Positions 18,097 through 51,176 of a DNA stretch of 64,000 nucleotides are shown in pieces. Numbering within the stretch: the first letter of the stretch is position 1; every line of letters begins with the position of its first letter. The stretch lies in IMG/VR virus record IMGVR_UViG_3300007513_000004, positions 1 to 64,000 of that record, one strand, 5' to 3'. The position numbers and the translations under genes were made by a program. Under the pieces are notes generated by a model. The model did not search any database. It saw nothing but the letters and a program-made list of their open reading frames with translations, and was not told the origin of the DNA.

Positions 18097-18127
18097 ATAT
18101 AGTATGTTTTAAACATCATAAATTTTT

Positions 18128-18203: not shown

Positions 18204-18241
18204 ATATTGTATACATACCATGCTGATTGACAACCAAATCT

Positions 18242-18463
18242 TTAGACAAATTTAGCTAAGTCAACAAGACTGGATCGCAACAGCGGTACAGCAGATGTTT
18301 CACAAACTACTTGCTCTGGAGGGTTTCCGTGCGTAATAACACAGCCGCCTTCTGCTCCAAAGCTTTCAATCTTGTGAATTCTGTCCACAGCAATAAGCAC
18401 AGTGTCCCGCTCTTTGTTGCCCAACAGTTTAGACCTTGTTTCTACTTTTAAAAATAAACTCAT
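18242..18463 (-). CDS. hypothetical protein
   Basis: ORF downstream of a CATC-type promoter (18500-18528). Confidence 0.7.
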   Translation of the reverse strand: MSLFLKVETRSKLLGNKERDTVLIAVDRIHKIESFGAEGGCVITHGNPPEQVVCETSAVPLLRSSLVDLAKFV

Positions 18464-18620
18464 TCGTTGTTTCCCTCTGGATATATTTCTGCCTATGTAT
18501 TCATAGGCGATGCAAAAATCGAATTTAAAAATTTAGTACCCACAAATTATAAAATTGCTTTGCCGGAAGTTTGGTTATACTAATTTAGTTACAAATATTG
18601 TAAGTTATTTAGGAGGAGTG

Positions 18621-19343
18621 ATGGTTGGTGATTTAATTTCAGTTTTGAACGAGTTAACAGATAGGGGTTTAACCAAAGAATCTGAATATTTATACGGAAT
18701 ATTCGAGAAGATTGCTTATGAATCCGAAGCCAGAGCAGAAGCTCTTTTAAACAGGGCTGATCCAAAAAGAAACCCTGAACCTAATGAGAGAAGCGTGGCA
18801 GCAGATCGCCTTGTAAACCTGCTCAAAAACCCCAATCGACCGGAGTTTGGCTATAAAGAACTTGCCAATTTAATTGCTCGAAGTGGCGTGCAAGACACTT
18901 TTGATTCAGAGGGCTTTCTTGGAGGGTCTCTGACCAATGCAGAAGTAACCGTATTGAGGCAGTTGCTGAGTCACGATGAAGCGCCAAGAGAAAGCGGATT
19001 TCGAAACCCCCGTTGGGAACAGGCTTATCGAGAGCAGCAGAGTGCTGGTCGAGAAGACGACACAAAGAAACCAAGATATGATCAGTATGAGGAAGACAAC
19101 CGGGCTGAAGATGTAGAGTTGATAGAAAGAATCCTAAACGCACTAGAGGGTCGAACAAAGCCTGTAAAAATAAAACGAAGCAGCGGCGTTAGTGAAGCAT
19201 GTGTTCTCACAAGAAATGGTGACTATACAACCTTTATAGTTCCGGTTTCAGATGTTAAATTGGGTCACAAGGTTTTATCAATAGATCATCTAATTGAAGA
19301 TTCGTTTCTATTTTTAAATCAAGATTTGGCCGAAATGTTCTAA
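18621..19343 (+). CDS. shared-leader family protein (divergent leader)
   Basis: AGGAGG SD; MVGDLISVLNELTDRGLTKESEYLYGIFEKIA. Confidence 0.8.
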   Translation: MVGDLISVLNELTDRGLTKESEYLYGIFEKIAYESEARAEALLNRADPKRNPEPNERSVAADRLVNLLKNPNRPEFGYKELANLIARSGVQDTFDSEGFLGGSLTNAEVTVLRQLLSHDEAPRESGFRNPRWEQAYREQQSAGREDDTKKPRYDQYEEDNRAEDVELIERILNALEGRTKPVKIKRSSGVSEACVLTRNGDYTTFIVPVSDVKLGHKVLSIDHLIEDSFLFLNQDLAEMF

Positions 19344-19349
19344 AGTAAA

Positions 19350-19856
19350 ATGGCACAATATAAGGTATTTTTAAATTGGTGGTTAGTATTTGTTTTAATA
19401 ATACTATTGTTTTTCCAAGGAACGCTCTCTGGCCTAACGGAGCAAGTATGGCAAAGTGATTTTACAAAATTAAGTTTTGTAAATTTATTATTACTATTGG
19501 GAACGTCAGTATGGTGCGGTTTTCAATCTTGGAATTTTAGCAGTTTAGTTAGTCAGCAAAGAATCCCAACTACAGCTATAAAAAGAATAGAGCAAAAGGT
19601 AGAAGCCGGATGGTTTGTTAGCGACCTAACTCTAACAATCGGCATGATAGGCACGGTGATAGGCTTTATAGCAATGCTTGGTGGGTTTATAAACTTAGAT
19701 ATAGAAAATATAGAGACAATACAAGACTTGATTACAGAACTAGGGTCTGGAATGTCAACGGCTCTATATACAACGCTAACTGGACTAATAAGCAGTGTAT
19801 TATTAAAAATACAATGTTTTAACCTTAGCTACTCTATAGATAAGTTTACAAAATGA
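19350..19856 (+). CDS. MotA/TolQ/ExbB proton-channel family protein
   Basis: GMIGTVIGFIAML...GMSTALYTTLTGL and additional TM helices. Confidence 0.85.
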   Translation: MAQYKVFLNWWLVFVLIILLFFQGTLSGLTEQVWQSDFTKLSFVNLLLLLGTSVWCGFQSWNFSSLVSQQRIPTTAIKRIEQKVEAGWFVSDLTLTIGMIGTVIGFIAMLGGFINLDIENIETIQDLITELGSGMSTALYTTLTGLISSVLLKIQCFNLSYSIDKFTK

Positions 19857-20443
19857 AAAAAAATTATCATTCAAATTTAGCGTTTTTAGACTTATTATTC
19901 AATACACTTTTGTGCTTTGTTGCTTTGTTTGCTATTGCTTTAATTATAGTAAGTCCAGAGAAAGAAACAAAAAATGTAGAGTCAAAAGCTGAGTTTATTA
20001 TAACTGCCAGTTGGCCGGGAGATATCAATGATGATATAGACTTATATGTTGAAGACCCCGAAGGAAATATAGTATACTTTAAAAAGCAAGAAGCAGGTTT
20101 GATGCATTTAGACAGAGATGACTTAGGCTCTCCCAATGATAGAATGAAAACAAAGGTTGGAATTATAGAGCATGATGACAATAGAGAGATCGTTACAGTA
20201 AGAGGCTATATGCCAGGGGAGTATGTTGTAAATATACATGCTTATACAAAAAGAGAAGATGAAGATGTTCCAGTATTGGTAACTGTTGATAAAATAAATC
20301 CTTTTCGTACAATAGTATCTAAGACTATTGAGTTGAGCAGCCAAGGAGACGAGGTGACGGTGTGTAGATTTATACTAAATTCAAATGGAGAAGTTCTTTC
20401 CACAAATGAATTACCAAAATCCTTTACACATTTCGGATGGTAG
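19853..20443 (+). CDS. ExbD/TolR/MotB-like single-TM partner protein
   Basis: TM with conserved Asp (AFLDLLF), ATGA overlap with the ExbB-like gene. Confidence 0.65.
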   Translation: MKKNYHSNLAFLDLLFNTLLCFVALFAIALIIVSPEKETKNVESKAEFIITASWPGDINDDIDLYVEDPEGNIVYFKKQEAGLMHLDRDDLGSPNDRMKTKVGIIEHDDNREIVTVRGYMPGEYVVNIHAYTKREDEDVPVLVTVDKINPFRTIVSKTIELSSQGDEVTVCRFILNSNGEVLSTNELPKSFTHFGW

Positions 20444-20444
20444 T

Positions 20445-21017
20445 ATGGAAGTCACTCTTATATTCGTAATATTAAGCACCATCTTACTATGGGCGGTTAT
20501 AGGTTCCAAGGGAAATTGGACATTAAAGATGGCCGCAATATTTGTTACTTTAATGTTTTCTTTAAACATTATGAGATCATTAGAGAACCTGTCTGGCTGG
20601 CCCTCCGAAGATGATTTGCCCAATCAGTTTTTGGTTCATTGGGTAATGGTAGAAGAGCCAAGCAAAGAGTTCAAAACAGATGGGGGCATTTACTTATGGG
20701 TGCAGAATTTAGACAATGAAACTTATGAAGTTTTGGAGTTCTTTAAGAACAATGAAGACTTTCAACCCAGGGCTTATAGGCTAGACTACTCCGCTGAGTT
20801 ACACGAAATGGCTTTGAAAATGAGGCTTCGACTGTTAGATGGAAGACCAATACTTGGAATGAATGAAGAAGAGTTTAATGAACTTAACTCTCCAGACCGA
20901 TTGCTTCAATTATTATTAGAGGATAATAAGAAAAAACAAATTGGCTCAATACACAATGATGATTCCGACGACCTATTCTTTTATGAGCTACCACCCTCGG
21001 GCGCTCAACAAAAGTAA
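20445..21017 (+). CDS. membrane protein, third gene of the ExbBD-like cluster
   Basis: two N-terminal TMs; co-oriented and abutting. Confidence 0.7.
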   Translation: MEVTLIFVILSTILLWAVIGSKGNWTLKMAAIFVTLMFSLNIMRSLENLSGWPSEDDLPNQFLVHWVMVEEPSKEFKTDGGIYLWVQNLDNETYEVLEFFKNNEDFQPRAYRLDYSAELHEMALKMRLRLLDGRPILGMNEEEFNELNSPDRLLQLLLEDNKKKQIGSIHNDDSDDLFFYELPPSGAQQK

Positions 21018-21031
21018 GATTAAACAAGTCT

Positions 21032-21547
21032 TTAGTCTATTCGGCGCGATTTATTTTTGAAGTCAAGTATATTGGACTGCATTTCTTCGCATCTTTTTAA
21101 GATGCTATACAGATCGCTTGGCGGCAATTGGCTTCTGTTATACAGCCTTAAGCTTTTCCAGTCTACAATGCTGGATAACCCAAGAGCATAAGCTACCCAT
21201 TCACTGCAATACCATTTGTTTATATGCTTTACTCTGAATGGAAGAATATGAGATAGGGTCATTCCAATCCAATCGTAAGATTGATCACAAGTTAGATCAT
21301 AGAAGTCCTGTATTGCCTCCACCTGTTCTGCCGTCGCTCTTAGGTTGATAAAATCCCACTCGTGAAGAAGTTGATCTTCAAGCATGTTATTTCGCACTCT
21401 AGGGCTATCTGGAGGGTATATGCCCATCCACCCCTTGTTGTCCGGTAGAACCAGCTCTACATGGCTGTATGGGCTTCTAGTCCACAATCTTATAAACCTG
21501 TCTCTCAACCGTCCATGGCCCTTATAAAATGCTATTTTGATATTCAT
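21032..21547 (-). CDS. permuted papain-like (NlpC/P60, YiiX-like) amidase/peptidase
   Basis: SPYSHVEL...YDW...WYCSE (His before Cys). Confidence 0.8.
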   Translation of the reverse strand: MNIKIAFYKGHGRLRDRFIRLWTRSPYSHVELVLPDNKGWMGIYPPDSPRVRNNMLEDQLLHEWDFINLRATAEQVEAIQDFYDLTCDQSYDWIGMTLSHILPFRVKHINKWYCSEWVAYALGLSSIVDWKSLRLYNRSQLPPSDLYSILKRCEEMQSNILDFKNKSRRID

Positions 21548-21587
21548 CTAATATACCTTAGGTAATAATATGTTTATTTGGTTTGGT

Positions 21588-21606
21588 TTGACGCGAAATT
21601 ATTTTT
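21588..21606. repeat. 19-bp direct repeat TTGACGCGAAATTATTTTT, copy 1
   Basis: exact match to 22647-22665. Confidence 0.9.
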
Positions 21607-22627
21607 AAGAAACAGGCCCAGGTGTATCGGGATATATTCCAGAGTCATATATTGTTTTTCTTATTATTTCCATTCTTCTTTCTGCATCAATCTTCTCTCT
21701 TCTTAATTTCAGACCTACATTTTTGACCAGCCTAGATACATCGTGGGTTATCACAGGCTCTTCTCCTTTCGCAAGTTCTGCTAACTCATTCATGCCGCCT
21801 GTCTCTGCTAGGATTAAAGCATACGCAATCAATGGAGGGGGAGTTCCTGTGAGAGCTTGTGTTCTTCCGGCTAATGGCGCTCCTTCCAATGCAGCCTGTA
21901 AAGAATTAACGTCTATTTCATTAAAGTCTGCAAGACCTAATGGCCTCGCTCTGCATTGGCCTCTTCTCTTTATTGCTCCGGTCAACCCTTTGTATAAACA
22001 GTTTCTGTTTTTTCTTATGTATAAATCTATCAATTTTGTTTTTGGTCTTCCTATATTATCGAAATTCCATATTGCCAAAGCCGGTATAGCAAAAGCTGCC
22101 ATTGTTCCAAAGCCCAAGTTGAATATACGCTTCATCACAACGCCTTGTAAATGAGATTCCGGTTGGGAACTTATCCAGTCTTGCCAGCTTGAATATTCGG
22201 GAATATTCATAAACATCGAAAACAATGGAGAAGCGGAAGATATGTTGAGCCTTTGTGCTAATTGTGTGCCCAATTGTTTTCCAGCACCTTGTTCAGCCCT
22301 GTCTCTTGTGTCAAGACTTTCTTCTGCAGAAGTCTTTAAGATAAGTTCGTCTACAATGCCTGCCTCTTTAATTAATCCTCTGCTATCCAATTCGTTAGCA
22401 AGAACGATTAGTTTTTTGACAACAAGATCATCAGATGCAAAAGAGTGAACCCTACGCTCCTCCTTCGCGACCCGCTTCTTTGAGGGCTTCCTTGGTCCGA
22501 ACCATCTAAGTATCTTCTTGGGATTGGTCTTTGATACAAGAGCCCATTCTACACGGTCCTTCTTGCCTTTACCTCGCGTCGTCCTTTTCTTTCTTACAAG
22601 CTTTGATTCTTTTATCATATCATTCAT
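21605..22627 (-). CDS. shared-leader family protein with a basic N-terminal extension
   Basis: internal KKLIVLANELDSRGLIKEAGIVDELILKTSA after about 70 aa. Confidence 0.8.
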   Translation of the reverse strand: MNDMIKESKLVRKKRTTRGKGKKDRVEWALVSKTNPKKILRWFGPRKPSKKRVAKEERRVHSFASDDLVVKKLIVLANELDSRGLIKEAGIVDELILKTSAEESLDTRDRAEQGAGKQLGTQLAQRLNISSASPLFSMFMNIPEYSSWQDWISSQPESHLQGVVMKRIFNLGFGTMAAFAIPALAIWNFDNIGRPKTKLIDLYIRKNRNCLYKGLTGAIKRRGQCRARPLGLADFNEIDVNSLQAALEGAPLAGRTQALTGTPPPLIAYALILAETGGMNELAELAKGEEPVITHDVSRLVKNVGLKLRREKIDAERRMEIIRKTIYDSGIYPDTPGPVS

Positions 22628-22646
22628 GTTAGTTTGTTTAGTTTAG

Positions 22647-22665
22647 TTGACGCGAAATTATTTTT
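22647..22665. repeat. 19-bp direct repeat, copy 2
   Basis: exact match to 21588-21606. Confidence 0.9.
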
Positions 22666-22681
22666 GCAACCTAACGGTTGT

Positions 22682-23458
22682 CTATTGCTTTTCCCAGTTA
22701 ACATCTTTTAATAAAATTCCATCTATCCTAGTGTTGCTAAGTGGTTTGTGCAGCCTGCTCCCTCTATCGTCAATATAGTATGCAGTATTTCCATCCGGCC
22801 TCATATACTTTCTCCAGCCTTTAAATCTATATTCAGTTAGATCGCCAGTCTGTGCTTGGGGAGGACTTTCCTCTACCGGCTTTAAGTCATCAGGTAGTCT
22901 CTGTATGAGGTTATCATAACCTGGCCTTCCCTTTTTTATAGAAACAGTCTTCGTGGCGTTTCCCGCTGAATCAAAGAAGCTTGTATTTATCTTTCCTGAG
23001 GTTATTAAAAACTTTGGGCCACCTTTCTCTGGAGGCACATAAACATACTTATAAGGATCTCCAGCTGTATTTATATAATACTCTTCGCCTAAACCATATC
23101 GTCGCAAAACCTTTGCCGTATAAGAACTTGGGCCTATTGCCGTCTTAATCATTCTATAGTTTCTATCTGCTGCCAACTTTTTCCCAGCCTGGAGTCTATT
23201 CTGCGTTTGGGTAATACACTTGTTGTATTGAGGAGGGCCCTTTGTAAGACCCTTGGCTGCACAATGATCTTCTTCCTTTGTCGTATAGGAGGTTGAACCT
23301 TCGCCAAGGTTTGGACTCATACAGCCGTTTAAATCATTGTTCCAGACCATTGGTGGCTTACAATATGCGCTCTTTATTATTGCATCTAAATAGTCAGCTT
23401 CTTTTGTTAAGCCTTTGCTATCCAGATGTGTTGCCAATTTAATTAATTCATTAATCAT
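22682..23458 (-). CDS. shared-leader family protein
   Basis: MINELIKLATHLDSKGLTKEADYLDAIIKSA. Confidence 0.85.
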   Translation of the reverse strand: MINELIKLATHLDSKGLTKEADYLDAIIKSAYCKPPMVWNNDLNGCMSPNLGEGSTSYTTKEEDHCAAKGLTKGPPQYNKCITQTQNRLQAGKKLAADRNYRMIKTAIGPSSYTAKVLRRYGLGEEYYINTAGDPYKYVYVPPEKGGPKFLITSGKINTSFFDSAGNATKTVSIKKGRPGYDNLIQRLPDDLKPVEESPPQAQTGDLTEYRFKGWRKYMRPDGNTAYYIDDRGSRLHKPLSNTRIDGILLKDVNWEKQ

Positions 23459-23533
23459 TTTATAATCTCCTAAAAATTGCCTTGCCCGTTCGAGAAGCTT
23501 TTGGCTTTAATAATATCATTCTTTAAAAGAATA

Positions 23534-24373
23534 TTAATAGGCAATATACGGGCTGGTTTCAAAGTCTTTTGAGAAGGATGCATCAAGAACAACAAGCTCT
23601 CCATTGGAGTTTGTTCCGAGGTTTCCAACCCCCAAATCTTTTGCGTCTATACCAAGCTTTGCCGAGAGCATAGCCAGCCTTCTAAACATTGGGTCTTTAT
23701 TTGCTGAATCCAATAGCTTGCGAATACTCTTCTCTTCTTCGGCGGGGGAACTGAATGGCACATAGGTTCTTAAAGAATTTATAAAAATAAAATCTTCTTC
23801 CCATTGTTTCTCGGTTTCTTTATACGCCGCCCAATGCAATAGTCTTCCTAGTACACTGGAGATAAAAGAAATATTTTGTTCTTCTATTTCCCTGATTAAC
23901 TCAGGAAAGAATTGTCCCAATTCTTTTTCATCCCTTATAACGGATACCTTATCCATTACAACCCAATCGAATTCGGAAGCTTTCATTGGTCTGTCGGAAC
24001 TTGCCGATCTACGTCCATGATGGTGAACTCTTGGAAACAGACCTCCGAATTCTGCTTGTCTATTGAACTCTGACTCATTCATCATTGATCCTCTAGGTCT
24101 TCTAGCTATCTTGACAACAAACGAATCATCCCCCGTTATTCCGATTGCATATCTGAAAGCTCCTGCTCCTGCCCAATAAAGGTTTTTATATTTCTCATGT
24201 ACCGCACGCTTTGCTTCCATGCCATCCGAATGATATAAATCCGTTGCAAGCTGCGGCAACTCTTGAAGCCAATCCCCATAATAACTGTGGATCATTTCTT
24301 CCAACTCTTCGGCCTCTTCTTCATGCTCCATATCTCTCAGGGCTATTGCCAGCTTATTTAATTTATATCTCAT
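23534..24373 (-). CDS. protein kinase-like (PKL fold) protein with a divergent leader
   Basis: Gly loop GAGAFR, VVK lysine, NESE, catalytic DLGVGN, VVLDA. Confidence 0.75.
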   Translation of the reverse strand: MRYKLNKLAIALRDMEHEEEAEELEEMIHSYYGDWLQELPQLATDLYHSDGMEAKRAVHEKYKNLYWAGAGAFRYAIGITGDDSFVVKIARRPRGSMMNESEFNRQAEFGGLFPRVHHHGRRSASSDRPMKASEFDWVVMDKVSVIRDEKELGQFFPELIREIEEQNISFISSVLGRLLHWAAYKETEKQWEEDFIFINSLRTYVPFSSPAEEEKSIRKLLDSANKDPMFRRLAMLSAKLGIDAKDLGVGNLGTNSNGELVVLDASFSKDFETSPYIAY

Positions 24374-24399
24374 CTCTTTCTTTTAACTTCCGAACTCTA

Positions 24400-25075
24400 T
24401 TCCTATTGTAAACGTCCACCAAACCAAACCCAACCGAAAGCATAAAGCATTATGTCCGCAATCCATACATCCGTATGACACCTCGGCTCCCATGCTTTTG
24501 CAATCATTTATATCTATCCTGCAAAACGGTAACATAACTTCTCTCCTATCTAATCTTTATCTTTTATTAGTATGCGTGTGTGTGCATGCCCTGTGTATAC
24601 TTTGCATGCGTGTGTGCGCACTCTATACAGTGCGTGTGGGCGAAGCTCTTTCCGGGGTGCTCGGGCCCTCTTGATTTAAGCGGCCTGTTTCCTTATACAA
24701 AAGTTGAAAAAAATTACCAGTAGAAAAATTTTGAATCCACGTTTTTTCTTATATGAAAAGGCAAAAAAGGTCTGGAGAGAAAAGGGTCGGTGTAGGCGTT
24801 TTTCGCCGTTTTCACAGAAAACTCAAGAATTTCTACCGGAAATATACCCTTTTTGTTCTCAGAAAAAAAGGTCGTCTGTTTTCACAGAAAAAAGGTTCTT
24901 TGGCCCCCAGAAAAAAGGCATTGATGCTTTTTAAAACAAAAAGTCTTTCTCAGCTGGGGAAAAATAAGTCTTTATATACTATATATAATAAAAAAGGCGA
25001 CCTCCGGTTAAGAAAGCCGCCCAATTTGAAGCTGAGTATAATTATATTATTATATCCAACCCATCCCTATGGTAT
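24400..25075. other. long non-coding boundary region with A-tract repeats and (CA/TG)-rich tract
   Basis: no credible ORF; CAGAAAAAA(A)GG at 24860, 24885, 24908; GTTTTCACAGAAAA at 24808, 24878. Confidence 0.6.
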
Positions 25076-25080
25076 TCGGG

Positions 25081-25521
25081 TTATTCATCTTCTGGAATGT
25101 AATCTAATTCTCCTTCAAACATTTCTTCTTCATCTCTATCTCTCTCATCTCTATCTTCATCCTTAATGAATGTGAAATTCATTTGGTAATTGGAATCATC
25201 CGAGTTATGAAACGGATCATACAAAGAATATTCTATTTTATTATCTGTATACATTGAAGTATCCCATTGACTTTGATACTCGGGTAATCCACCCATGTCT
25301 GTGGGACTTACATTCGCAGTATCAAATGTAAATTCAAATGTATTGTTAGAATCTTCTACAACAAAAGGATGAGTTGGTTCATTGAGACTAAGAAAACTTT
25401 TCACAGTATCAACATCAACATCGAAATAAATTTCTTTATCTGTTAATGCATTATACAAGTTGTATGAATCTTCTTCCATTTTATAAATGTAGAAGTTTAA
25501 TGTTTTATTTGTTCCTGCCAT
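25081..25521 (-). CDS. hypothetical acidic protein
   Basis: ORF with GGAG SD. Confidence 0.7.
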   Translation of the reverse strand: MAGTNKTLNFYIYKMEEDSYNLYNALTDKEIYFDVDVDTVKSFLSLNEPTHPFVVEDSNNTFEFTFDTANVSPTDMGGLPEYQSQWDTSMYTDNKIEYSLYDPFHNSDDSNYQMNFTFIKDEDRDERDRDEEEMFEGELDYIPEDE

Positions 25522-25855
25522 TTTGGTACTCCGATGTTTGTTAAGACTTATCTTTCAAATTGATTTAAAGCTAAATACATTTTACTTAGCCGGGTTGGAA
25601 TAGTCTGGAAATAAAAACTAAAATTATGTCAAGACTATTCTGTTCCAATTATAGATAAAAATAATAATATAAAATCTTGGTTGAATATCAAATTGATAAA
25701 CATTCTATTTGTCTGCCCCACTTATTGTCCGTTACAAACTGAGGACATACCGCTCCACATTGGAATAGTCGGTGCCAAACTTCTGTTAAATAATATCTTA
25801 ACAAATTTTGCTGGGTAGGATGGTAAGATAAACGATGGCCGGTTAGAATAGTATG

Positions 25856-26170
25856 TTAAACTTTTGCCCGAAGGATCGGCTCGTAACTCTCAGTCATGAA
25901 GTCTGCACCAAACATTTTCTCCCAACCTAGGTATCTCGTTTTATCGGAAAAGAAAATATCTAAACTATAATGATATTCATCATTAGTTCTGTCTTCTTTA
26001 ATTATCTTATCAGTATTTAATTCAACTTCCTTCATCCCAAAGTATCTGGCTTCAACGAAATAAACATAGTAATAGTTACCATTGCTCTTTTCAAATAAAG
26101 AAATATGGCCCAGCAAATCGCCTCCGCCTCCTGGAGATAAATTTACCATCGTTCTGTCGATAAGTTTCAT
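25856..26170 (-). CDS. hypothetical protein
   Basis: ORF; stop codon lies within a box (ends RAKV*). Confidence 0.65.
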   Translation of the reverse strand: MKLIDRTMVNLSPGGGGDLLGHISLFEKSNGNYYYVYFVEARYFGMKEVELNTDKIIKEDRTNDEYHYSLDIFFSDKTRYLGWEKMFGADFMTESYEPILRAKV

Positions 26171-26417
26171 AACAGAAGTTATGATATTATTAATAGGATG
26201 TTAAGTTTTTGCCCAGGATATTTCATAGCAGTTAAAGCTGGTCTCGAAATCGAGATCCAAGTTTAATTATCATTAGATGGGCATTTAGCGAGCCTTAAAG
26301 TCGCAGCTCCAGAGCTCATGAAGTTTTAAAGACTATTAGATAAGTATCTAATAAAGATTAAAATAAGGAGGCAGCCTGCCGGCACAACTTTAAGGCTCTA
26401 TACATCTGGATGTATTT

Positions 26418-26446
26418 TTCATTTTTAATTTTGCATCGACTACTTC
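26418..26446 (+). promoter_or_regulatory. CATC-type promoter (paralogue 1)
   Basis: TTCATT-TTTAATTTTGCATCGAC-TACTTC. Confidence 0.75.
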
Positions 26447-26499
26447 ATTTCGTAGGGCACAATGTCCTGCACCAACCAATGAGAAAAGGAAAAGATAAA

Positions 26500-27003
26500 A
26501 TGAGCGACAAGACTGCAATTTTTGAGAATGATAACACTGAGTCTCCTCTCCAGGTGATTCGTCAGACTATGAGCGTTTCGCTGTCCGATGGCGGCGCGGC
26601 CCAGGTTTCTTTTGCCACTAATCGTGGTAAGGGTTCCGGTGCCCAGGTTCTTGCTGTCGATGACTTTGCCGAGGTTGTGAGTACTCTCCAGGGTTACTCT
26701 GATGCTGGTATCGAAGAGCGTGAGGAAGAGCAGCTTTCTCCTGCTGATACGATTCGTCGTACCATCCGTATTGAGGATGGTGTGGTCAGCTTCCGTACCC
26801 GTTCGGGTAAGGGCGCGAAGCCTGCTAAGATTCCTGCGAGTCAGTTCGCGGAAGTCTGCGAGCTTCTGTCTGGTACTCTGTCTGCGGTGGAGGCTGCTGG
26901 TCAGTCTCTTTCTCCGGCTGATGAGACTGCTGATGAAGCAGCCGAAGAGCCTGCTATGGACGGAGACTACTCCGACTATGAGGACATGGGTGACGACGAG
27001 TAA
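26500..27003 (+). CDS. tandem-repeat protein, paralogue 1 of 3
   Basis: two internal repeats (SFATNRGKGSG / SFRTRSGKGAK); AGGA SD. Confidence 0.85.
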   Translation: MSDKTAIFENDNTESPLQVIRQTMSVSLSDGGAAQVSFATNRGKGSGAQVLAVDDFAEVVSTLQGYSDAGIEEREEEQLSPADTIRRTIRIEDGVVSFRTRSGKGAKPAKIPASQFAEVCELLSGTLSAVEAAGQSLSPADETADEAAEEPAMDGDYSDYEDMGDDE

Positions 27004-27024
27004 TTAATACTCTGAAACGAAAAA

Positions 27025-27052
27025 GCCCACCCGGTTTAACTTCCGGGTGGGC
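27025..27052. terminator. intrinsic terminator between convergent genes
   Basis: 10-bp stem GCCCACCCGG/CCGGGTGGGC with an A-tract on the left. Confidence 0.8.
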
Positions 27053-27182
27053 ACTCGTTTAATCTATATGTCAAACTTTTGCACGAGGATATGTTGTGCC
27101 GTCGTCTGCCTTATTCCAATTACCGCCTTCTCTTCTGGCTAATTGTGCTGGAGTTAACCTGTGTTCAGGAATGTCTTTTTCT

Positions 27183-27452
27183 CTATCTGCCCAACTGCGA
27201 GAAGACCCCACCGGTTTGTCCCAATCGAGAAAAAGACATTCCATCACCGATAGGTCCTGGAGCAGTTTCTTCAACCTCGCCCTCAGCCCCTACAAGCCAA
27301 CCAGGACCTTCGGCCCCTTCTACTGGGTTTCCATCAATATCTAATGGAATTCCTCCAGCAAATTTAAAAATTACTTTATCAATAACATCAGCTTCTTTCA
27401 CAAGGCCTCTGCTATCTAGTTCGCTGGCTAATTTAATTAATTCTACAATCAT
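27183..27452 (-). CDS. shared-leader family protein (possibly frame-disrupted)
   Basis: MIVELIKLASELDSRGLVKEADVIDKVIFKFAG. Confidence 0.75.
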   Translation of the reverse strand: MIVELIKLASELDSRGLVKEADVIDKVIFKFAGGIPLDIDGNPVEGAEGPGWLVGAEGEVEETAPGPIGDGMSFSRLGQTGGVFSQLGR

Positions 27453-27571
27453 TATAGTCTCACGATATTAATTAAAATAATTAATAGAACTTTAAAGCTC
27501 TCGATAAAACTCTCTATAGAACAAAATTTCTTTGATTAATCTTTTAAAATTACTGGTAGAAATCTTTTTCA

Positions 27572-27754
27572 TCAATCGACTTCTTTACCAAGAGTTAACT
27601 TAACTAATTGAGCTGCATTTTGCTTCAAAGTTCTAAGACCCTTTCTGGCCCTGGTTCCTGCCGCAGCATTACCAGCAGCATTCTTTGAAACATCAGTTTC
27701 TAAACTTGCAACCAACTCTTTAATCTCTTCCCATTTACTTTCTACTGTAGCCAT
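27572..27754 (-). CDS. histone H1-like (Hc1 family) small basic protein
   Basis: GNAAAGTRARK motif; GGAGG SD. Confidence 0.75.
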   Translation of the reverse strand: MATVESKWEEIKELVASLETDVSKNAAGNAAAGTRARKGLRTLKQNAAQLVKLTLGKEVD

Positions 27755-27806
27755 AACTACCTCCTTTGTTTTTTATTATACTATTTGTCAAACTTTTGCC
27801 CAAGGG

Positions 27807-28241
27807 CTACCTGTGGCCCCAGTAAGATTGCGAAGCCTGATTTGGCTCAATAATCCTTACTGTAGTTTGATCATGCCAACATTGACATTCTTCATCATAC
27901 TCTGGGCCGGAGATTTTCTTAATCAAAATCCCATCATCCCTTACTCCTAAAGAGAAATAGTGAGTGGCATTAAACCCAACCTCAAACCATTCCACGGCAT
28001 CGCCACTGAAAGGATCTTTATAAGAATAAGGCCCTGTGGGATCGGAAGAGCAAGAGATAAGCCACTCCTTAATATTGTCGGGACAAAGATTTAGAGCCGC
28101 CTCGGTAGCCGCCCTTCTTTCTGCCCTATATTCCCGATCTCGCTGCTTTGCTGCAATCTCATCTCTGTCGAAATGCCAATCGGGAATCGATGCGAGATCA
28201 TCAATCATGGTTATCTTCCTGTTCTTCCGTAAAGGTTTCAA
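27807..28241 (-). CDS. hypothetical protein
   Basis: ORF ending immediately before a box; start uncertain. Confidence 0.65.
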   Translation of the reverse strand: MKPLRKNRKITMIDDLASIPDWHFDRDEIAAKQRDREYRAERRAATEAALNLCPDNIKEWLISCSSDPTGPYSYKDPFSGDAVEWFEVGFNATHYFSLGVRDDGILIKKISGPEYDEECQCWHDQTTVRIIEPNQASQSYWGHR

Positions 28242-28464
28242 TATTTTCTACAGTTGTGTAAAAGCCTTCCTCGTCATCAATCTGATAACTCATAGAAACA
28301 GCTTTAGATTGATTATGATATCTAACGGCATAATCAATATGCCCCCACTCTGGGAGGTTGGTTATAAAATTATGACCACTATAAAATCTTTCGCCCCAGG
28401 GGACGCCACCACGTTCAATTACAAACATTATTCCATAACCTCCGCGTCGTAAACTTTGATCCAT
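28201..28464 (-). CDS. hypothetical protein
   Basis: ORF; start uncertain. Confidence 0.55.
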   Translation of the reverse strand: MDQSLRRGGYGIMFVIERGGVPWGERFYSGHNFITNLPEWGHIDYAVRYHNQSKAVSMSYQIDDEEGFYTTVENIETFTEEQEDNHD

Positions 28465-28682
28465 TGTTTTTGCTTTTGCGAAAAAGCAAGCGATTGACGA
28501 GAAATATGATTAATTAATTCTTCCCGCTTTTGTGCCTGCGAGCGTCGGATAGGCTCTTCCATCATTAATTCAAAACGAGCCTTGGCTACGCCATAATCCT
28601 TTCCGCTTGACCACCCCATAATATTTCCTGCCAAGTATGCCAAAATTCCAACACAACTAATGACAATTATTTCTGCAATCAT
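28428..28682 (-). CDS. small membrane-anchored protein
   Basis: N-terminal TM; GGAGG SD. Confidence 0.65.
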   Translation of the reverse strand: MIAEIIVISCVGILAYLAGNIMGWSSGKDYGVAKARFELMMEEPIRRSQAQKREELINHISRQSLAFSQKQKQWIKVYDAEVME

Positions 28683-28855
28683 TATTCGGCCCTCCGATAA
28701 TTATTAAAACAATATCCTGCCAAAACTGTGCATAACAATGCAAAGCCCCAGCTGTGGGCAGTAAACGCTTGCCATGCAAATACAGTATTTAGAATTGCGC
28801 AAAACAAGCTGACTCTTCGAGAACTTAAAAAATCCATAGTATTCTCCTATATGTA

Positions 28856-28932
28856 TGGCACGCCCGATAGGATTCGAACCTATGACCCTCGGCTTAGAAG
28901 GCCGATGCTCTATCCAACTGAGCTACGGGCGC
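28856..28932 (-). tRNA. tRNA-Arg(TCT)
   Basis: cloverleaf, loop CT-TCT-AA, CCA end. Confidence 0.96.
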
Positions 28933-29874: not shown

Positions 29875-30078
29875 TTACTTGATAACTGATGATAAAACAG
29901 TATTAATTTTTTCTTGAAGATCATAGTTAAGTTTGATCTCAAGAATATTATTAATTTTCTTGCCTGCCTTTTCCAGCAAGCCCTTGGGTGTCTGCACACC
30001 CGCGCATGTGTTACAAGGGTCAACCTCGCCACATAACTCACAGGCTCCTTGGCCTGGATATACCGTTGTTCTATTCAT
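29875..30078 (-). CDS. small Cys-containing protein
   Basis: CELCG...CNTC; AGGAGG SD. Confidence 0.65.
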   Translation of the reverse strand: MNRTTVYPGQGACELCGEVDPCNTCAGVQTPKGLLEKAGKKINNILEIKLNYDLQEKINTVLSSVIK

Positions 30079-30259: not shown

Positions 30260-31387
30260 TTATTCATAATCCCTGACGGCAATTCCGACAGGGAATCTTG
30301 GACGACCATCGTCCGTTAACTCTTGATACCTGACTGTCAAGTATTTTCCAATATAATCATCTAAATTTTTATAGATTACTGCGCGTTCTTCATGACTTCC
30401 GCGTGGACGCACACTAAACTCAAGTCCATCGGAAGTGGTACAGCGATATACGACAAGACCAGCTTCCCGACCGGAACCGTCCTCTCCACCAATAATCTTA
30501 AACTCATCATCAACAAATCTCTTTACCTTTTGCAAATCATATGAACGATGCTTGTACTTGTACGCACTCGCTTGGTTGCGCACCATCATGCCCTCATAGC
30601 CTTGCTGAACAAACATGCTTTCATACATATCAAACTCTGCTTGGTCAACAACATCATATGTTGATATGATTTTAATATTCTTTCCAATGATGGTCCACCC
30701 CTGACAATAATGTGGAAACATTGTTGAGCCAACTCCTTTTTGCGGCAACCTACACTCAAATGCGAGAGAAGGGTGTGGGGAATCATAGATATGATATTCA
30801 AGCAAATCTGTATCATCCCTCTTCTTCTTGACGGCAGCAATGATTCTTTGGAACGTCCACCCATGCACGTACAACTCTCCATCCGTGCATTGCCCGTTCG
30901 CGAGCATGGCACAAAGCTGTGCATTAATCTTATCGGGGATATCAATAACCTTTCCCTTGCGCGACCACATAGTTACAACACCATCGTCTTTGCGTGCGAG
31001 CATACGCACTCCATCCAGCTTAGGCTGAACAAGACAGGGAAAGTTAATCTTCGCGCTATGCTTGTCATACCTGTGCGCGAGCATAGGTAGGAACAATCCT
31101 TCTGACGTAGTAGGAATCTTATCCTTATCCTCTACATATCCTGAATCCTTTTTACGGCTATGTGCAGATTGAGCTTCAGAACATGCCTGTTCGTAGACAG
31201 AGGTTTCGTTTGCTCTACCGAGATTCTTGCCCTCTCCAACATAGCGTTGGTCAAGTTGTTTCTTGCCGTCCTCATAGCCATGTTCAGTTTCGATGTAACA
31301 GGAGCCGTCACCCATCTTGAGAACCGAGATATTCCACTCTTTAATCTTTCCATTGGTGGACTTTCCATATAGTGTAGGTAGATTCAT
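30260..31387 (-). CDS. ATP-dependent DNA ligase with N-terminal WGR-like domain
   Basis: motif I QPKLDGVR, DGELY, GYEGMMVR, LQKVK, OB-fold YLTVRYQELT..G.PRFPV. Confidence 0.93.
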   Translation of the reverse strand: MNLPTLYGKSTNGKIKEWNISVLKMGDGSCYIETEHGYEDGKKQLDQRYVGEGKNLGRANETSVYEQACSEAQSAHSRKKDSGYVEDKDKIPTTSEGLFLPMLAHRYDKHSAKINFPCLVQPKLDGVRMLARKDDGVVTMWSRKGKVIDIPDKINAQLCAMLANGQCTDGELYVHGWTFQRIIAAVKKKRDDTDLLEYHIYDSPHPSLAFECRLPQKGVGSTMFPHYCQGWTIIGKNIKIISTYDVVDQAEFDMYESMFVQQGYEGMMVRNQASAYKYKHRSYDLQKVKRFVDDEFKIIGGEDGSGREAGLVVYRCTTSDGLEFSVRPRGSHEERAVIYKNLDDYIGKYLTVRYQELTDDGRPRFPVGIAVRDYE

Positions 31388-34441: not shown

Positions 34442-34529
34442 GTATCACAAGGGGTTGAGCCCTTGACCCGCCATCGGGAAGGTGGAGAGCAGCCTCGCTG
34501 GTGTCGGGGCAAACACAAATGGAGTTGTA

Positions 34530-34934
34530 ATGAACATTTTTGGAAATGACAACGAGAGTCCCGCCGCCATTCTTCGTCAGACGATGAGCGTCAGCCTTAC
34601 TGATGACGGTATTCCGGTGGTTTCTTTCGCCACTAACCGTGGCAAGGGTAGCGGTTCGCAGGTGATTCCGGTTGCCGAGTTTTCCGAGTACGTTTCGACG
34701 TTGGAAGACATTTTGGAGTCCGGTATCCCCGAGGATGCTGATGAGGATTTGTCGGCAGGAGAGATGGTGCGTCGTACCATTCGTCAGGATGACGGTGTTA
34801 TCTCCTTCCGCGTGCGTGGAGGAAAGGGTGCAAAGCCCGCCAAGGTCAGCACTGATAACTTCGCAGAAGTTGTCGAGCTTCTTCGGTCCACGGTCGATGC
34901 GGTTGAAGGAGCCTGTGAGTCGCTGACAAAGTAG
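34530..34934 (+). CDS. tandem-repeat protein, paralogue 2 of 3
   Basis: SFATNRGKGSG / SFRVRGGKGAK; GGAG SD. Confidence 0.85.
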   Translation: MNIFGNDNESPAAILRQTMSVSLTDDGIPVVSFATNRGKGSGSQVIPVAEFSEYVSTLEDILESGIPEDADEDLSAGEMVRRTIRQDDGVISFRVRGGKGAKPAKVSTDNFAEVVELLRSTVDAVEGACESLTK

Positions 34935-35399: not shown

Positions 35400-36047
35400 A
35401 TCACATTACTACCGTTAACTATCCATTTATTCAAACATGTTCCAAACTTCATAAGCCAAACATGTGCCAGCAAGAATCCATAGTGACGATAAAACGCCAG
35501 AGCCAGCAATAATCAATAATGAGTCCATCAAAACCTCCTTCGTCAAGGGCAGTCGTCGCCCTCTAACCCTATGTAGTCGGTGTAAATTTCTTGACAAAAA
35601 ACTTGTAATTACTTTACAAATTGATTTGTAAAACTTTTGCCCAGAACTGGACATTAAAAATCGAATTCTATTTTATCATCGGCTATTTTAGAGTGAAGGA
35701 AAAACGAAGGCAATGCAAAGAGGCAACCAGAATGGCCGTCACGAATCATATCTGATATCCAATTAGTGTTAGAATAGATATATTCAAAGAGCGGGCTGTC
35801 AAGCGGTTACTTTACCGAAAGCGGCGCTACTGTTTAGTCCTTGAGTACCGGGGAAACTCGGTACTCATTTATCTTTATTGTAAATTTTTTGCCCGAAGGG
35901 AAAACCCCGAAGGCACCTAGTACCTTCGGGGTTGAGTTTAATGCCATTGGCATGACCCGCTCACGGGTGAATTATCGGAATGTTTCTGTTTCCAGCCGCT
36001 TGACCCGTTGCAACGGCGCGGCATCTTGTTTATAGTAACCTCCTCGA

Positions 36048-36680
36048 TTAGTGTTTGTGATAGTCGACGTTTGATACCTTGGGGTTCCAACAAGCCCGGC
36101 ACGATCCGCACTTGCCGTCTTGCTTAAGAGCGGGGCAACCATGGCCCATACCCGCATCAATCGTACTCGTAGGCAGGTCGGTGCGCGGCGGCTTGCCACC
36201 TATCATCGTAGCCGATAGCCGGATGACAAGGTTAACGGGCCATGCTGCTACCCGTGCGAACGCTTCCCGGATCATCTTACCTTCACGAGACGGTGCCCAG
36301 AACTCTGCCCATGGTAGGCGTTCGGCTACCTCTACCCACATCAGAACATGATCGACGCTCTGAAAGTCACCGCTATCATGGATACGGAAGTATGGATCGT
36401 CCGGGTTAGTGTAGTGACCGATTAGCTTAACCATACCATCGGTCCATAGTGGATGGGTCAAAGCCTGATAGCGGCGCTCGTGCCCTAACTTGACGTTCGG
36501 GTACATGTAGTTATTTTTCATGGCGTAGCAGTTGCTACAACTTGATCCCTCTATCCCGGCAAGGATACTGCCCAGGATACAGCGTGTTGCACTTAGTGCG
36601 GTGCTGAACCCTGGCATCTTGCTCGGCTTACCTAATCCGCTACGATGCCCGGTTATCTCTTTCGCTTGTTTTAGATTCAT
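36048..36680 (-). CDS. Gp88-like phage protein (Cys cluster, FRxHDSGD)
   Basis: KPSKMPG...CSNCYA...FRIHDSGD...CGSCRACW. Confidence 0.8.
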   Translation of the reverse strand: MNLKQAKEITGHRSGLGKPSKMPGFSTALSATRCILGSILAGIEGSSCSNCYAMKNNYMYPNVKLGHERRYQALTHPLWTDGMVKLIGHYTNPDDPYFRIHDSGDFQSVDHVLMWVEVAERLPWAEFWAPSREGKMIREAFARVAAWPVNLVIRLSATMIGGKPPRTDLPTSTIDAGMGHGCPALKQDGKCGSCRACWNPKVSNVDYHKH

Positions 36681-36929
36681 TGTGTTCCCTTCAATGATTT
36701 GATTTGGTATTGTCAGTATTACCGCCACGTCATCTACTGTCTACAAGTTTTTCAAAAAAGTTTATAATCCCGCTCGGCGCACCCGTCTGGCCCGGTTTAC
36801 ACCGTCGCCCCGTTGATACCGTAGCGGTACTGAATAATATCGGACCCTGCATATTGGGTGAGCATATAATGAAAGGGGTGAGCATTAGCACGTCTGCCCA
36901 CTTACCTGTGACCACCAAACATATTTATA

Positions 36930-37504
36930 TATGTATGATGTACGCACACGGGTGAGTAACACCCTGCACAGGCTTTCTCCCTGTTCTTGTCCTTTGGAGA
37001 CGCTGAACAGCAAGCAATACTTCTGACCGACATTCTGTGCTCAAGTTGGTAAGCTGTACACTTCCCCCGCTTGTTACACGTTATCATTCAACCTCATGGT
37101 AAGGTATCCTAATAACCCCTTTCGGGACGACAAAATCGTTGCCGACTTTGCCAGAGAGACTTCTGCCTTCAGAAGTTAAGTTCTATCAGATTTCTCCGAT
37201 TTACCATGACTCTTTAGTCAGTGCCCTTATCCCGTTTCCACGATGAACCTACAAGTCCGCAGATACCCTCGGCTGCACTTCCACAGTAGTATGTGGACTC
37301 ATGCCTTAGATTACTGAATGATATTCAAGGCCACTACACCTCTTAACTCATTCCCCCTCACAGCCAAGCGGCAGGTCCATATGAATAGCACCCTTCTTGG
37401 GCGGGGTTCTCTCTATCTCCGAAGAGTGCAGGAGCCGGTAACTCCACCTGCATTTAAAGACCCAAGAACGGGGGTCAGTTTAAGTTTTCAAAGAACTTTC
37501 GCTC
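36930..37504 (-). ncRNA. candidate large structured ncRNA (about 560 nt)
   Basis: own promoter, boxA-like leader, more than 12 hairpins including UUCG and GAAA tetraloops, no credible ORF. Confidence 0.7.
37482..37496 (-). promoter_or_regulatory. boxA-like antitermination element
   Basis: GTTCTTTGAAAACTT just downstream of the predicted TSS. Confidence 0.6.
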
Positions 37505-37510
37505 TGTCAT

Positions 37511-37539
37511 AACATAGTTGATGTTAAAACAGAATCCAA
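37511..37539 (-). promoter_or_regulatory. CATC-type promoter driving the large ncRNA
   Basis: TTGGAT-TCTGTTTTAACATCAAC-TATGTT. Confidence 0.75.
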
Positions 37540-37630
37540 AAATTTTCGGGGAAAAGATTTACATAAATGTAAAAGTTTTGCCCCGATGAGTTTATCATAC
37601 GCGTCTGCGCAGATAAACTCAAAGGGAATT

Positions 37631-37825
37631 TTAGAGGTTTTTCCAACTCCAAGGTTCGCCGTCCAGCTTTCGCTGAAGTCGAATTCTGAAGCCCAAAGCC
37701 TTATGCCCCGTCAACGGAGTCAATAACTCAATGGCATACTTGACCTCGTCCTCGGTTGCTTTTCGCAAAAGAGCATCGCGGGCAAAGCCATAAACGAATT
37801 TCCGGTGTTCTGGATTGTCAGGCAT
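37631..37825 (-). CDS. hypothetical protein
   Basis: ORF with GAGGA SD. Confidence 0.7.
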   Translation of the reverse strand: MPDNPEHRKFVYGFARDALLRKATEDEVKYAIELLTPLTGHKALGFRIRLQRKLDGEPWSWKNL

Positions 37826-37887
37826 GTGTGTGTCCTCAAGTTAGGTGGCGAGGGCAGCGGGCGGAAAGTCCACCCGCCGCCTTTGTC

Positions 37888-38328
37888 TTACTCTTCGTCG
37901 GGAGAGCCGCCAGCAAGCTGACTACCCGCGTTCTCGACAGCATCAAGAGTGCTGCGGAGAAGTCCCACGACCTCTGCAAATTCACCGACTGGCATCTTGG
38001 CTGGCTTGGCACCCTTACCGGAACGAACCCGGAAGGAAATCACACCTTCGTCAGACTTGATAGTTCGGCGCACCGTTTCAGCGGCAGAAAGCAACTCTTG
38101 CTCGGCAGTCTCGGGGATGCCATTATCAACGTAGCTTTCCAATGTTTCAACGTAATCCCGATATTCCTCAACAGGAAGAATCTGGGCACCTGAACCCTTG
38201 CCGCGATTCGTGGCAAAGCTGACGACCGCTTGGCCGTCGTCGTCCAGAGAAACAGCCATTGTCTGACGAATCGTCTGGGCCGGAGACTCATTGTGCTCCG
38301 ATGCAAAAATGTTAGTTTTGTCGCTCAT
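37888..38328 (-). CDS. tandem-repeat protein, paralogue 3 of 3
   Basis: SFATNRGKGSG / SFRVRSGKGAK; two CATC promoters upstream (38385-38413, 38452-38480). Confidence 0.85.
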   Translation of the reverse strand: MSDKTNIFASEHNESPAQTIRQTMAVSLDDDGQAVVSFATNRGKGSGAQILPVEEYRDYVETLESYVDNGIPETAEQELLSAAETVRRTIKSDEGVISFRVRSGKGAKPAKMPVGEFAEVVGLLRSTLDAVENAGSQLAGGSPDEE

Positions 38329-38567
38329 TTATTCTACTCCATGCGGCATTTTTGGTTGATAGCTATATTGCTCGCCGCTACTGCGATATAGCCGATGCTA
38401 AAATGAAAATCGAAAATCTCTATCTCTTTCTCTTTCTTCTCTCTCTGCTACAAAGTAGTTGATGTTAAAATCAAATTGAAAAATTGCCAAATGTCAATCT
38501 TTTGCCCCGTCTGTTTTTGAATTCTGTTTTATCATCAGATACATAGAAACATAAGGAGTAAAGCAAT

Positions 38568-43967: not shown

Positions 43968-44188
43968 AACCCTCCAGGTTAGTACTCCTATGTAGCTGAT
44001 GATAAAACAGAGTTGAGATTTTTATGCAAATCTTTTGCCCAGGGCTAATTTGGTTTCTGTTTTATCATCAGCTACATAAAGACATAAGGAAAGGAACACT
44101 GTTCGCGCTGCCTCCCCATAGGGAATAAGGTGGCCGTCTGGAATCGAAAGATTAGGTTCCCAACCTTTTGACTCACAAAGGAGATTCA

Positions 44189-44454: not shown

Positions 44455-44530
44455 GGGTCCATAGCTCAACAGGCAGAGCGCCGGACTTTTAATCCGTAGG
44501 TTCAGGGTTCGAGTCCCTGTGGACTCACCA
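44455..44530 (+). tRNA. tRNA-Lys(TTT), second copy
   Basis: cloverleaf, loop CT-TTT-AA, CCA end. Confidence 0.95.
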
Positions 44531-44544
44531 TTTATCAAACTTTT

Positions 44545-44629
44545 GCCCGAGTGGTGGAATCGGTATACACAGCAGACTTAAAATCTGCCGCCTTTGGGCT
44601 TGCCGGTTCGAGTCCGGCCTCGGGTACCA
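44545..44629 (+). tRNA. tRNA-Leu(TAA)
   Basis: class II cloverleaf, loop CT-TAA-AA, CCA end. Confidence 0.95.
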
Positions 44630-50234: not shown

Positions 50235-51176
50235 CTACTTGCGCTGGCCCTCCCCCTTGTCGATGAGGTAGCGCATGACCTTGCCCGCTTCATTCGCGGC
50301 CCGCTGAATCACGGTAGGGTCATCCTTGAGAGCCTTCCGCCAGTTGGCAAGGTAGGCCACATGGTTGTCCATCAAACCCTCTCGCTTGACTCCCAGATAG
50401 GCGCATGTGAACGCCGCGCCAATCTCGGCAACCAACTCCTCGTAAGCATACGCCTCCGAGCCGAAGCCCGTGAACTTGACGATGCCATCCCGGTTGAGTC
50501 GGTCCTTTGCACCTGACCAGTGGGCGTGCTCATGGATGGTAGTGGCCCAAAAATCAGCAACAGTGGTGAAGGCTCCGGCCTCGGGCACCATGATGTAGTC
50601 CTCGCGAGGGGAGTAGAAAGCACGCCCGCCGCCCGTGCGGAAATCCGCGTCGATACCTTTGACAAGTGCAGCCGCCGCCTCATGGCCCACCTTTGGGTCA
50701 ACCTCTGAAATCTCGGCAGACGGTAGGGGGTTCGTCGTTTGCTGGTTGTTGAAAGTGTACGAGCTTCCAAATCCGATGAACTTTGTGGACCCCTTGACCA
50801 AGAGACTCGCGCCACAGGGCTTGCACTTTTTTGCAAATCCACATGGGCGGCCACAACTGTTGCAGGCCAGCTTCGGGAAGAAAATAGGAGTCCCCTTCTC
50901 GCCTTTGCGCACGTAGTTGCCGCTCTTTTGCCACTGGCCAAACCCGGCCCAACGGTTGTCACCAAACTGAACCCCGGCCATCATCAGCATAAAGCCATTG
51001 AAGTTTCCGCCGTAGGCGCGGCCCGTCAGGATGTTGATTGGCATCCCACCAGCAAGGGACCTATCCCACGGCATAATCCAAGGGGTGCCGTCCTCGGGCG
51101 GGTTGTCGAGGGCTTCGATAATCTGCGCGGCTATACGCTCGCACGTCTCTTGAATCTTGTCGTTGGGCTTGCTCAT
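50235..51176 (-). CDS. ardC: ArdC-family antirestriction / ssDNA-binding protein with an inserted Zn-ribbon
   Basis: WIMPW, N..TGR.Y.G.N, VRKGEKG, RAFYSP..D.I, HEHAHW, YAYEELVAEIGAAF; promoter 51225-51253. Confidence 0.9.
   Translation of the reverse strand: MSKPNDKIQETCERIAAQIIEALDNPPEDGTPWIMPWDRSLAGGMPINILTGRAYGGNFNGFMLMMAGVQFGDNRWAGFGQWQKSGNYVRKGEKGTPIFFPKLACNSCGRPCGFAKKCKPCGASLLVKGSTKFIGFGSSYTFNNQQTTNPLPSAEISEVDPKVGHEAAAALVKGIDADFRTGGGRAFYSPREDYIMVPEAGAFTTVADFWATTIHEHAHWSGAKDRLNRDGIVKFTGFGSEAYAYEELVAEIGAAFTCAYLGVKREGLMDNHVAYLANWRKALKDDPTVIQRAANEAGKVMRYLIDKGEGQRK

Follow-up and report, generated by a model that had tools for sequence, protein, structure and literature searches.

The sequence analyzed here (the window) is a 64,000-nucleotide stretch, positions 1 to 64,000, of IMGVR_UViG_3300007513_000004, a 223-kb uncultivated viral contig from a marine jumbo phage. 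The window carries a tmRNA gene (1878-2227), nine dispersed tRNA genes, and mostly small ORFs. A sigma-70-family protein, an ATP-dependent DNA ligase and an ArdC-like protein are among the few recognizable products, and most of the large ORFs have no Pfam or PHROG match. Between a 64-aa ORF that ends at 37631 and a GP88-like gene that starts at 36686 (36048-36686) there are about 950 nt without a credible ORF. We found that this interval contains, on the minus strand (36869-37505), a gene for a highly structured non-coding RNA of roughly 640 nt. The original prediction placed a large ornate non-coding RNA at 36930-37504, possibly extending to about 36760, and proposed that it was either a divergent member of the ROOL or GOLLD classes or a new class. 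Our results support the RNA and favor a new class. They do not support a divergent member.

The region is non-coding. All six frames of 36691-37640 contain 10-22 stop codons, and the longest ORF in the RNA region is 64 aa. Eight ORF pieces searched separately gave no Pfam family at curated level. Across 96 homologues, the longest ORFs differed in strand and position, and only 19 reached 100 aa. The minus strand of 36930-37504 folded better than expected by chance. Its minimum free energy was -194.3 kcal/mol (z = -3.28 against dinucleotide shuffles), and none of 100 shuffles was as good. The plus strand gave z = -0.94.

We found a copy of a recurring motif just upstream of the RNA. The interval originally predicted to be a promoter (37511-37539) contains an exact match to TTTTANCATCNNYTAT at 37514-37529 on the minus strand (TTTTAACATCAACTAT), about 18 nt upstream of the first conserved base of the RNA. 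This motif occurs 38 times in the window at up to 2 mismatches, compared with 7.35 +/- 2.4 in shuffled sequence, and the sites cluster at 29.8-52.4 kb, in the small-ORF region. The four exact CATCRRYTAT sites share further upstream similarity (GATTCT..TTTTA.CATC...TAT), and two of them (29882 and 38388) have an ORF start codon or predicted ORF start downstream. A copy with one mismatch precedes the tmRNA gene. We take the motif to be the phage's own promoter class, so that the RNA has a dedicated promoter.

To determine whether the RNA is conserved, we searched for homologues. A related 128-kb contig carries a copy that is about 75% identical, downstream of the same 146-aa gene, with obvious compensatory changes. 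A search with a 21-nt conserved core found nine viral stretches. In all, pattern scans found homologues in 22 viral contigs and over 120 marine metagenome contigs. A profile search of these loci gave 148 hits, of which 121 were full-length, always one per locus. After removal of duplicates and of sequences more than 95% identical, 79 sequences remained. They are 626-690 nt long (median 664 nt) and 55-95% identical. The window copy (628 nt) is among the more divergent. Its nearest relative, from the locus we call L126, is 89% identical.

The alignment also defined the limits of the RNA. The family profile (nhmmer) aligned to a single copy in the window at 37515-36852 (E 1e-160). Conserved RNA sequence starts at GUUCUUUGAAA (37496-37486) and ends with a hairpin plus U-rich tail at 36903-36869. 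The conserved part is therefore 628 nt (37496-36869). The 5' end near 37505 is inferred from the position of the promoter motif. The 3' limit is about 60 nt beyond the predicted 36930. The proposed extension to about 36760 is not conserved in homologues, and that spacer carries a promoter-like site for the GP88-like gene (36743-36715).

Covariation among the homologues is overwhelming. RNAalifold on only seven sequences gave 157 pairs, of which 75 had compensatory double changes. Scoring every column pair in the 79 sequences, we found 23 antiparallel helices of at least 4 bp with at least 3 covarying pairs. A parallel-register control, which keeps composition and phylogeny, gave none. Three-base-pair "helices" with two covarying pairs were judged unreliable, because the control gave 31 against 51. 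For the 5'-central domain (37406-37235), RNAalifold predicted 47 pairs, 41 of them compensatory. In our structure of this domain, which includes two non-nested helices, 96.9% of 4,503 cells form standard pairs, compared with 42-49% when partners are slid by 1-3 columns. Fifty of 57 pairs change on both sides, compared with 16-21 in the slid controls. The covariation score is 0.577 against about 0.12, and none of 500 shuffles reached the observed values. For the 3' domain (37019-36869; 47 sequences) the corresponding values are 98.6% against 39-47%, 23 of 39 pairs against 4-14, and 0.456 against 0.04-0.09.

The RNA has about 30 helices, described here from the 5' end with all positions on the minus strand. 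The first conserved element, GUUCUUUGAAA (37496-37486; family consensus G-N-UCUUU-N-A-N-A), is nearly invariant in the 79 sequences. Mutual information found no pairing partner for it; pairing with AGAAC or AAGAAC is possible, but those bases are invariant. In several homologues this motif lies 6-10 nt after the CCA end of a tRNA gene. Two hairpins follow (37476-37427), GACCC/GGGUC (37476-37459) and UGCAGG/CCUGCA (37452-37427), the second with 6 of 6 pairs covarying and 97% canonical pairs. A small hairpin, CUC-UUCG-GAG (37426-37417), has 3 of 3 pairs covarying and is longer and GAAA-capped in most homologues. A junction domain (37406-37354) then contains CCCC/GGGG (37406-03 / 37357-54), CCAAG/CUUGG (37400-396 / 37368-64) and a hairpin at 37388-37377, the loop of which, UUCAUA (37385-80), forms a pseudoknot with UGUGAG (37362-57). 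This pseudoknot is 98.7% paired, with 4 of 5 pairs changed on both sides.

The next two elements are joined through their loops. A GAAUGA/UCAUUC helix (37353-37316) encloses the hairpin GAGGU/GCCUU, and a three-tier stem (37311-37265; helices 9-11 of the domain structure) ends in the hairpin UCCACA/UGUGGA (37297-37280). Helix 11 is 99.6% paired, with 6 of 6 pairs changed on both sides. The loops GUAGUG (37337-32) of the first and UACUAC (37291-86) of the second form a 6-bp kissing helix that is 96.8% paired, with 5 of 6 pairs changed on both sides. The most conserved element (37263-37237) is the hairpin UCUGCGG/UCGUGGA (helix 12, 99.8% paired), which carries the 13-nt loop ACUUGUAGGUUCA. Loop bases UAGGUUC (37251-45) pair with GAACUUA (37183-77), forming a pseudoknot of 7 bp that is 100% canonical with 4 covarying pairs. 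Downstream of a variable-length insertion, CAUGGUA (37208-02) pairs long-range with the loop UACCAUG (37101-095), and the hairpin AUCG-GAGAAAUC-UGAU follows at 37200-185. These have 7 bp with 3 covarying pairs and 4 bp with 4 covarying pairs, respectively.

The central domain (37176-37019) is closed by the long-range helix ACUUCUG/CAGAAGU (37176-70 / 37025-19) plus AGGCA/UGUC. It contains the invariant strand AGAAGUCUCUCUG (37164-52), the hairpin UGGCAA/UUGUCG (37153-28), the invariant GUCCC-GAAA-GGGGU (37128-15), the hairpin GUUAUUA/UGAUAAC (37116-080) and a hairpin with the invariant loop GUACA (37059-55). Covariation here is 4 of 7, 3 of 5, 4 of 6 and 6 of 7 pairs. The following segment (37015-36981) has GCU/AGC (37015-13 / 37004-02), CUGUUC/GAACAG (37010-05 / 36986-81) and the inner stem CGUCU/GGACA. 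In the inner stem 4 of 4 pairs change on both sides. CUGUUC/GAACAG barely varies: 3 of 6 pairs are invariant and only one pair changes on both sides, in a single sequence. The segment at 36972-36905 is closed by CCUGUGC/UCACAGG, with the hairpin GGGU/ACCC (36964-50) and CAUC/GGUG. In the window copy and in L126, the two small hairpins that other members carry here are replaced by AU-rich sequence. Finally, the 3' terminal hairpin GUGGGC/GCUCAC (36901-36879) is followed by a U-rich tail ending at 36869, and most homologues have a long U run after the hairpin. Its loop ACGUGC (36893-88) forms a pseudoknot with GUGCGU (36947-42). Helix 6 of the 3' domain is 98.2% paired, and three pairs change on both sides in 17-23 of 47 sequences with no mismatch at those pairs. 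The terminal hairpin is therefore part of the fold as well as a likely terminator. In all, five non-nested contacts are supported by covariation: three loop-to-strand pseudoknots, the loop-loop kissing helix and the strand-to-loop helix.

Of the eight helices in the original prediction, four were supported: CTC/GAG, TCCACA/TGTGGA (6 of 6 pairs covary), ATCGGA/TCTGAT and GGGTG/CACCC. Two, CCC-GAAA-GGG and CTGTTC/GAACAG, were invariant or barely varied and so were not informative. Two had been assigned the wrong partner. In place of TTCTTGGG/CCCAAGAA, CCAAG (37396-37400) pairs with CUUGG (37364-37368), with 5 of 5 pairs covarying. In place of the local hairpin ACTTCTG-AAGG-CAGAAGT, ACUUCUG (37170-37176) pairs long-range with CAGAAGU (37019-37025). 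The local hairpin and the helix UUCUUGGG/CCCAAGAA were both rejected in favor of these covarying alternatives.

The RNA does not match a catalogued family. No Rfam 15 family (copy of September 2026), including GOLLD, ROOL, OLE, HEARO, raiA, group I and II introns, RNase P and tmRNA, matched the RNA at the gathering score in a scan of the whole window, or at E<=10 in 36300-38000. In 15 homologous loci scanned at E<=10 the only consistent hits were flanking tRNAs, and ten long loci scanned at the gathering score added only tRNAs. The RNA, a consensus-like member and a 14-kb flank (blastn and megablast), and the largest ORF (tblastn), had no match among 50,697 phage records. We found no description of this family in six full-text searches of the literature, although our search did not extend to the 2023 catalogue of over ten thousand viral structured-RNA candidates and a fragmentary earlier listing cannot be excluded.

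The family is often found near tRNA genes. In 19 of 57 loci with at least 1 kb on both sides, a tRNA gene lies within 1 kb, and 77 of 82 such tRNAs are on the same strand. In one locus (L132), the RNA is wedged between tRNA-Met and tRNA-Leu with gaps of 0-3 nt. Eight of ten long loci contain tRNAs. However, two thirds of loci have no tRNA gene within 1 kb, and in the window the nearest tRNA genes are 7-8 kb away. Clustering of 1,952 neighboring ORFs found no constant protein partner. Frequent but inconstant neighbors are a 67-aa acidic protein (34 loci), an FKBP-type isomerase (32), the 146-aa family that is present twice in the window (20) and a CspA-like cold-shock protein (13).

We compared the family with three known large RNAs. 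Like this family, ROOL (RF03087) is encoded by phages and prophages, often near tRNA islands. It is of similar size (ROOL env-120 is 659 nt), has many helices with multiple pseudoknots and a covarying kissing loop, has a poorly conserved internal linker, and has no associated protein gene (PMC12286853). ROOL comes from rumen and Lactobacillales phages, whereas this family is from marine large-genome phages. GOLLD (RF01998) is phage-encoded, often next to tRNA genes, with an ornate, pseudoknotted fold and unknown function. GOLLD env-38 came from a marine metagenome, downstream of tRNA-Met (PMC12286853), and several members of this family also follow tRNA-Met. This family is shorter than GOLLD (626-690 nt against more than 800) and is conserved along its whole length, whereas GOLLD has a conserved 3' half and a variable 5' half. 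OLE RNA (RF01071) is also a non-coding RNA of about 600 nt with an elaborate conserved structure, but it is chromosomal in extremophilic Firmicutes, is linked to oap protein genes and forms a membrane-associated RNP dimer. We found no such gene linkage here. The published GOLLD env-38, ROOL env-120 and OLE sequences (PMC12286853) contain none of four invariant motifs of this family (GUCCCGAAAGGGG, CUCUCUG, AAGAACAGGGAG and GUGUACAGC), a comparison of exact motifs only.

Based on these results we conclude that the locus is a structured RNA gene of an uncatalogued family (probability about 0.95). The gene is free-standing and the RNA is under strong purifying selection in many marine phages. The family is absent from Rfam 15 and is carried once per contig by uncultivated marine large-genome phages. 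We read it as a new class of large ornate phage RNA. Its function is inferred only. Our tentative interpretation (probability about 0.4) is that it acts in trans in the manner of GOLLD and ROOL, which form RNA-only cages (PMC12286853), as an architectural RNA particle made alongside the phage's tRNAs and tmRNA during take-over of host translation. It would fold without a dedicated phage protein and probably associates with further copies of itself or with a host translation component. In ROOL, a conserved kissing loop first read from covariation as a tertiary contact proved to be intermolecular, and a self-complementary sequence also bridges chains (PMC12286853). Candidates for the same roles here are the 6-bp kissing helix, the invariant palindromic UGUACA around the GUACA loop, and the invariant GAAA tetraloop, and the variable-length insertion site resembles the ROOL linker. 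However, all of the supported pseudoknots can be drawn within one molecule, so nothing requires multimers, and a 4-6-nt palindrome is weak evidence for dimerization. No expression, stability or oligomerization data exist for the RNA. In addition, the functions of GOLLD and ROOL are themselves unknown, so the analogy transfers a structural behavior and not a biological role.

Our results might also indicate that the RNA is the scaffold or decoy of a ribonucleoprotein, although we consider this less likely. It could bind and sequester a host protein, such as a ribosomal protein, an RNase or a tRNA-targeting defence nuclease, or recruit a non-adjacent phage protein, without self-assembly. Long invariant single-stranded stretches (GNUCUUU at the 5' end, AGAAGUCUCUCUG, AAGAACAGGGAGAAA and GAUAGAGAAAAC) have no covarying partner, as expected for recognition sites. 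Genes for RNA-chaperone-type CspA and FKBP-type isomerase are frequent neighbors, and OLE RNA, a precedent, works with proteins and may sequester bS21 (PMC12286853). However, no neighboring gene family occurs in more than 34 of about 139 loci, its position varies between loci, and the commonest neighbor, the 67-aa acidic protein, is an unlikely RNA binder.

It is also conceivable, but unlikely, that the RNA is a new large ribozyme that might, for example, process or repair RNAs of the phage's tRNA/tmRNA transcripts, or cleave or ligate itself out of tRNA-containing precursors. The size, the number of pseudoknots and the invariant core (ACUUGUAGNUUCAUCG, GUCCCGAAAGGGG) are typical of catalytic RNAs, and several copies are packed between tRNA genes with gaps of 0-10 nt, so the ends must be made by processing. 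However, there was no match to RNase P, group I or II introns or any Rfam ribozyme even at E<=10, and host RNase P, RNase Z and RNase E could make the ends. GOLLD, ROOL and OLE were also suspected ribozymes, and none of the papers consulted reports a catalytic activity for them.

A cis-acting leader of the GP88-like gene, such as a giant riboswitch or 5' UTR, is very unlikely. The RNA lies on the same strand, 180 nt upstream of that gene. However, thirteen loci with GP88 homologues lack the RNA, its neighbors differ from locus to locus, it ends in a terminator-like hairpin with a U run in most members, and a separate promoter-like site precedes the GP88 gene. A decayed protein gene or the RNA of a mobile element (a group I/II intron, a retron RNA or a transposon guide RNA) might be suggested by an intergenic block that is unusually long for a dense phage genome and by the inverted paralogous genes flanking the wider region (34482-34934 and 37888-38328), but is contradicted by the lack of any conserved ORF, by substitutions that are compensatory for helices and do not follow a codon pattern, by the absence of a match to an intron, retron or guide-RNA family, by the lack of a reverse transcriptase, transposase or endonuclease consistently nearby, and by intact flanking ORFs around an RNA with its own promoter and end.

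Large RNAs with this density of conserved tertiary structure are rare. The few known ones are ribosomal RNAs, RNase P, self-splicing introns, or unexplained RNAs such as OLE, GOLLD and ROOL. It is not excluded, though doubtful at present, that this family is a third class of giant phage RNA, structurally unrelated to GOLLD and ROOL and common in marine metagenome contigs, that builds an RNA-only higher-order assembly or carries a new catalytic activity, with a role in the translation take-over program (tRNAs and tmRNA) of uncultivated marine jumbo phages. With a deep and diverse alignment and five non-nested contacts already mapped, the RNA would be an excellent target for structural work and ribozyme screening. 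An independent third class in the same genomic niche would show that the niche, phage tRNA-rich regions, selects for such RNAs, and it could give a comparative handle on what they do. The family also marks a lineage of marine large-genome phages that has almost no annotated genes.

We found that a 16-nt motif, TTTTANCATCNNYTAY, recurs 38 times in the window (clustered at 29.8-52.4 kb; e.g., at 29882-29897, 35671-35686, 38388-38403 and 43992-44007), compared to 7.4 expected. The exact copies examined lie in intergenic sequence, and two of them have an ORF start codon or predicted ORF start downstream. The motif is probably a phage-specific promoter class. A sigma-70-family protein is encoded at 3893-4750 (minus strand). 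The phage also encodes a tmRNA (1878-2227, minus strand; 117 bits) with the tag peptide ANNNYYYEPVALAA, and a copy of the recurring promoter motif with one mismatch lies at 2274-2289. In addition, there are nine tRNA genes (Gly, Pro, Thr, Asn, Met, Lys x2, Arg, Leu; 10790-28932, minus strand, and 44455-44629, plus strand). These are mostly dispersed singly between small ORFs and are not in one array.

An inverted pair of paralogous genes of unknown function (150 and 146 aa; 34482-34934, plus strand, and 37888-38328, minus strand) brackets the RNA, the GP88-like gene and a gene for a DUF5658 membrane protein. Both paralogues also occur in the related contig (loci L016 and L017). Elsewhere in the window, we found genes for a protein with an ArdC N-terminal domain plus a zincin metallopeptidase domain, which is a possible anti-restriction factor (50235-51176, minus strand), and for an ATP-dependent DNA ligase (30260-31387, minus strand).

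Two contigs binned as bacterial MAGs carry the RNA: PBIO01000025.1 (Halobacteriovorax sp.) and NHDW01000006.1 (Methylococcaceae TMED69). The first has the same length and score as the IMG/VR viral contig 2788500220_000014. Based on this, they are probably phage DNA mis-binned into MAGs.

Most members of the RNA family carry two small hairpins (ACCC-GAAA-GGGG and CAGGCU-CAAA-AGGCUUG) at the position corresponding to 36916-36936 (minus strand) of the window. In contrast, the window copy and its closest relative, L126, have replaced these hairpins with AU-rich sequence, indicating that this sub-domain is dispensable. We also found a GC-richer subgroup (54-59% GC; homologous loci L028, L033, L046, L048, L092, L140 and L146) with an extra hairpin of about 35 nt inserted after the 5' motif. 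The junction sequence of this subgroup is GAUAGCCAGAAC, where the majority has GAUAGAGAAAAC. This suggests that there are at least two subtypes.
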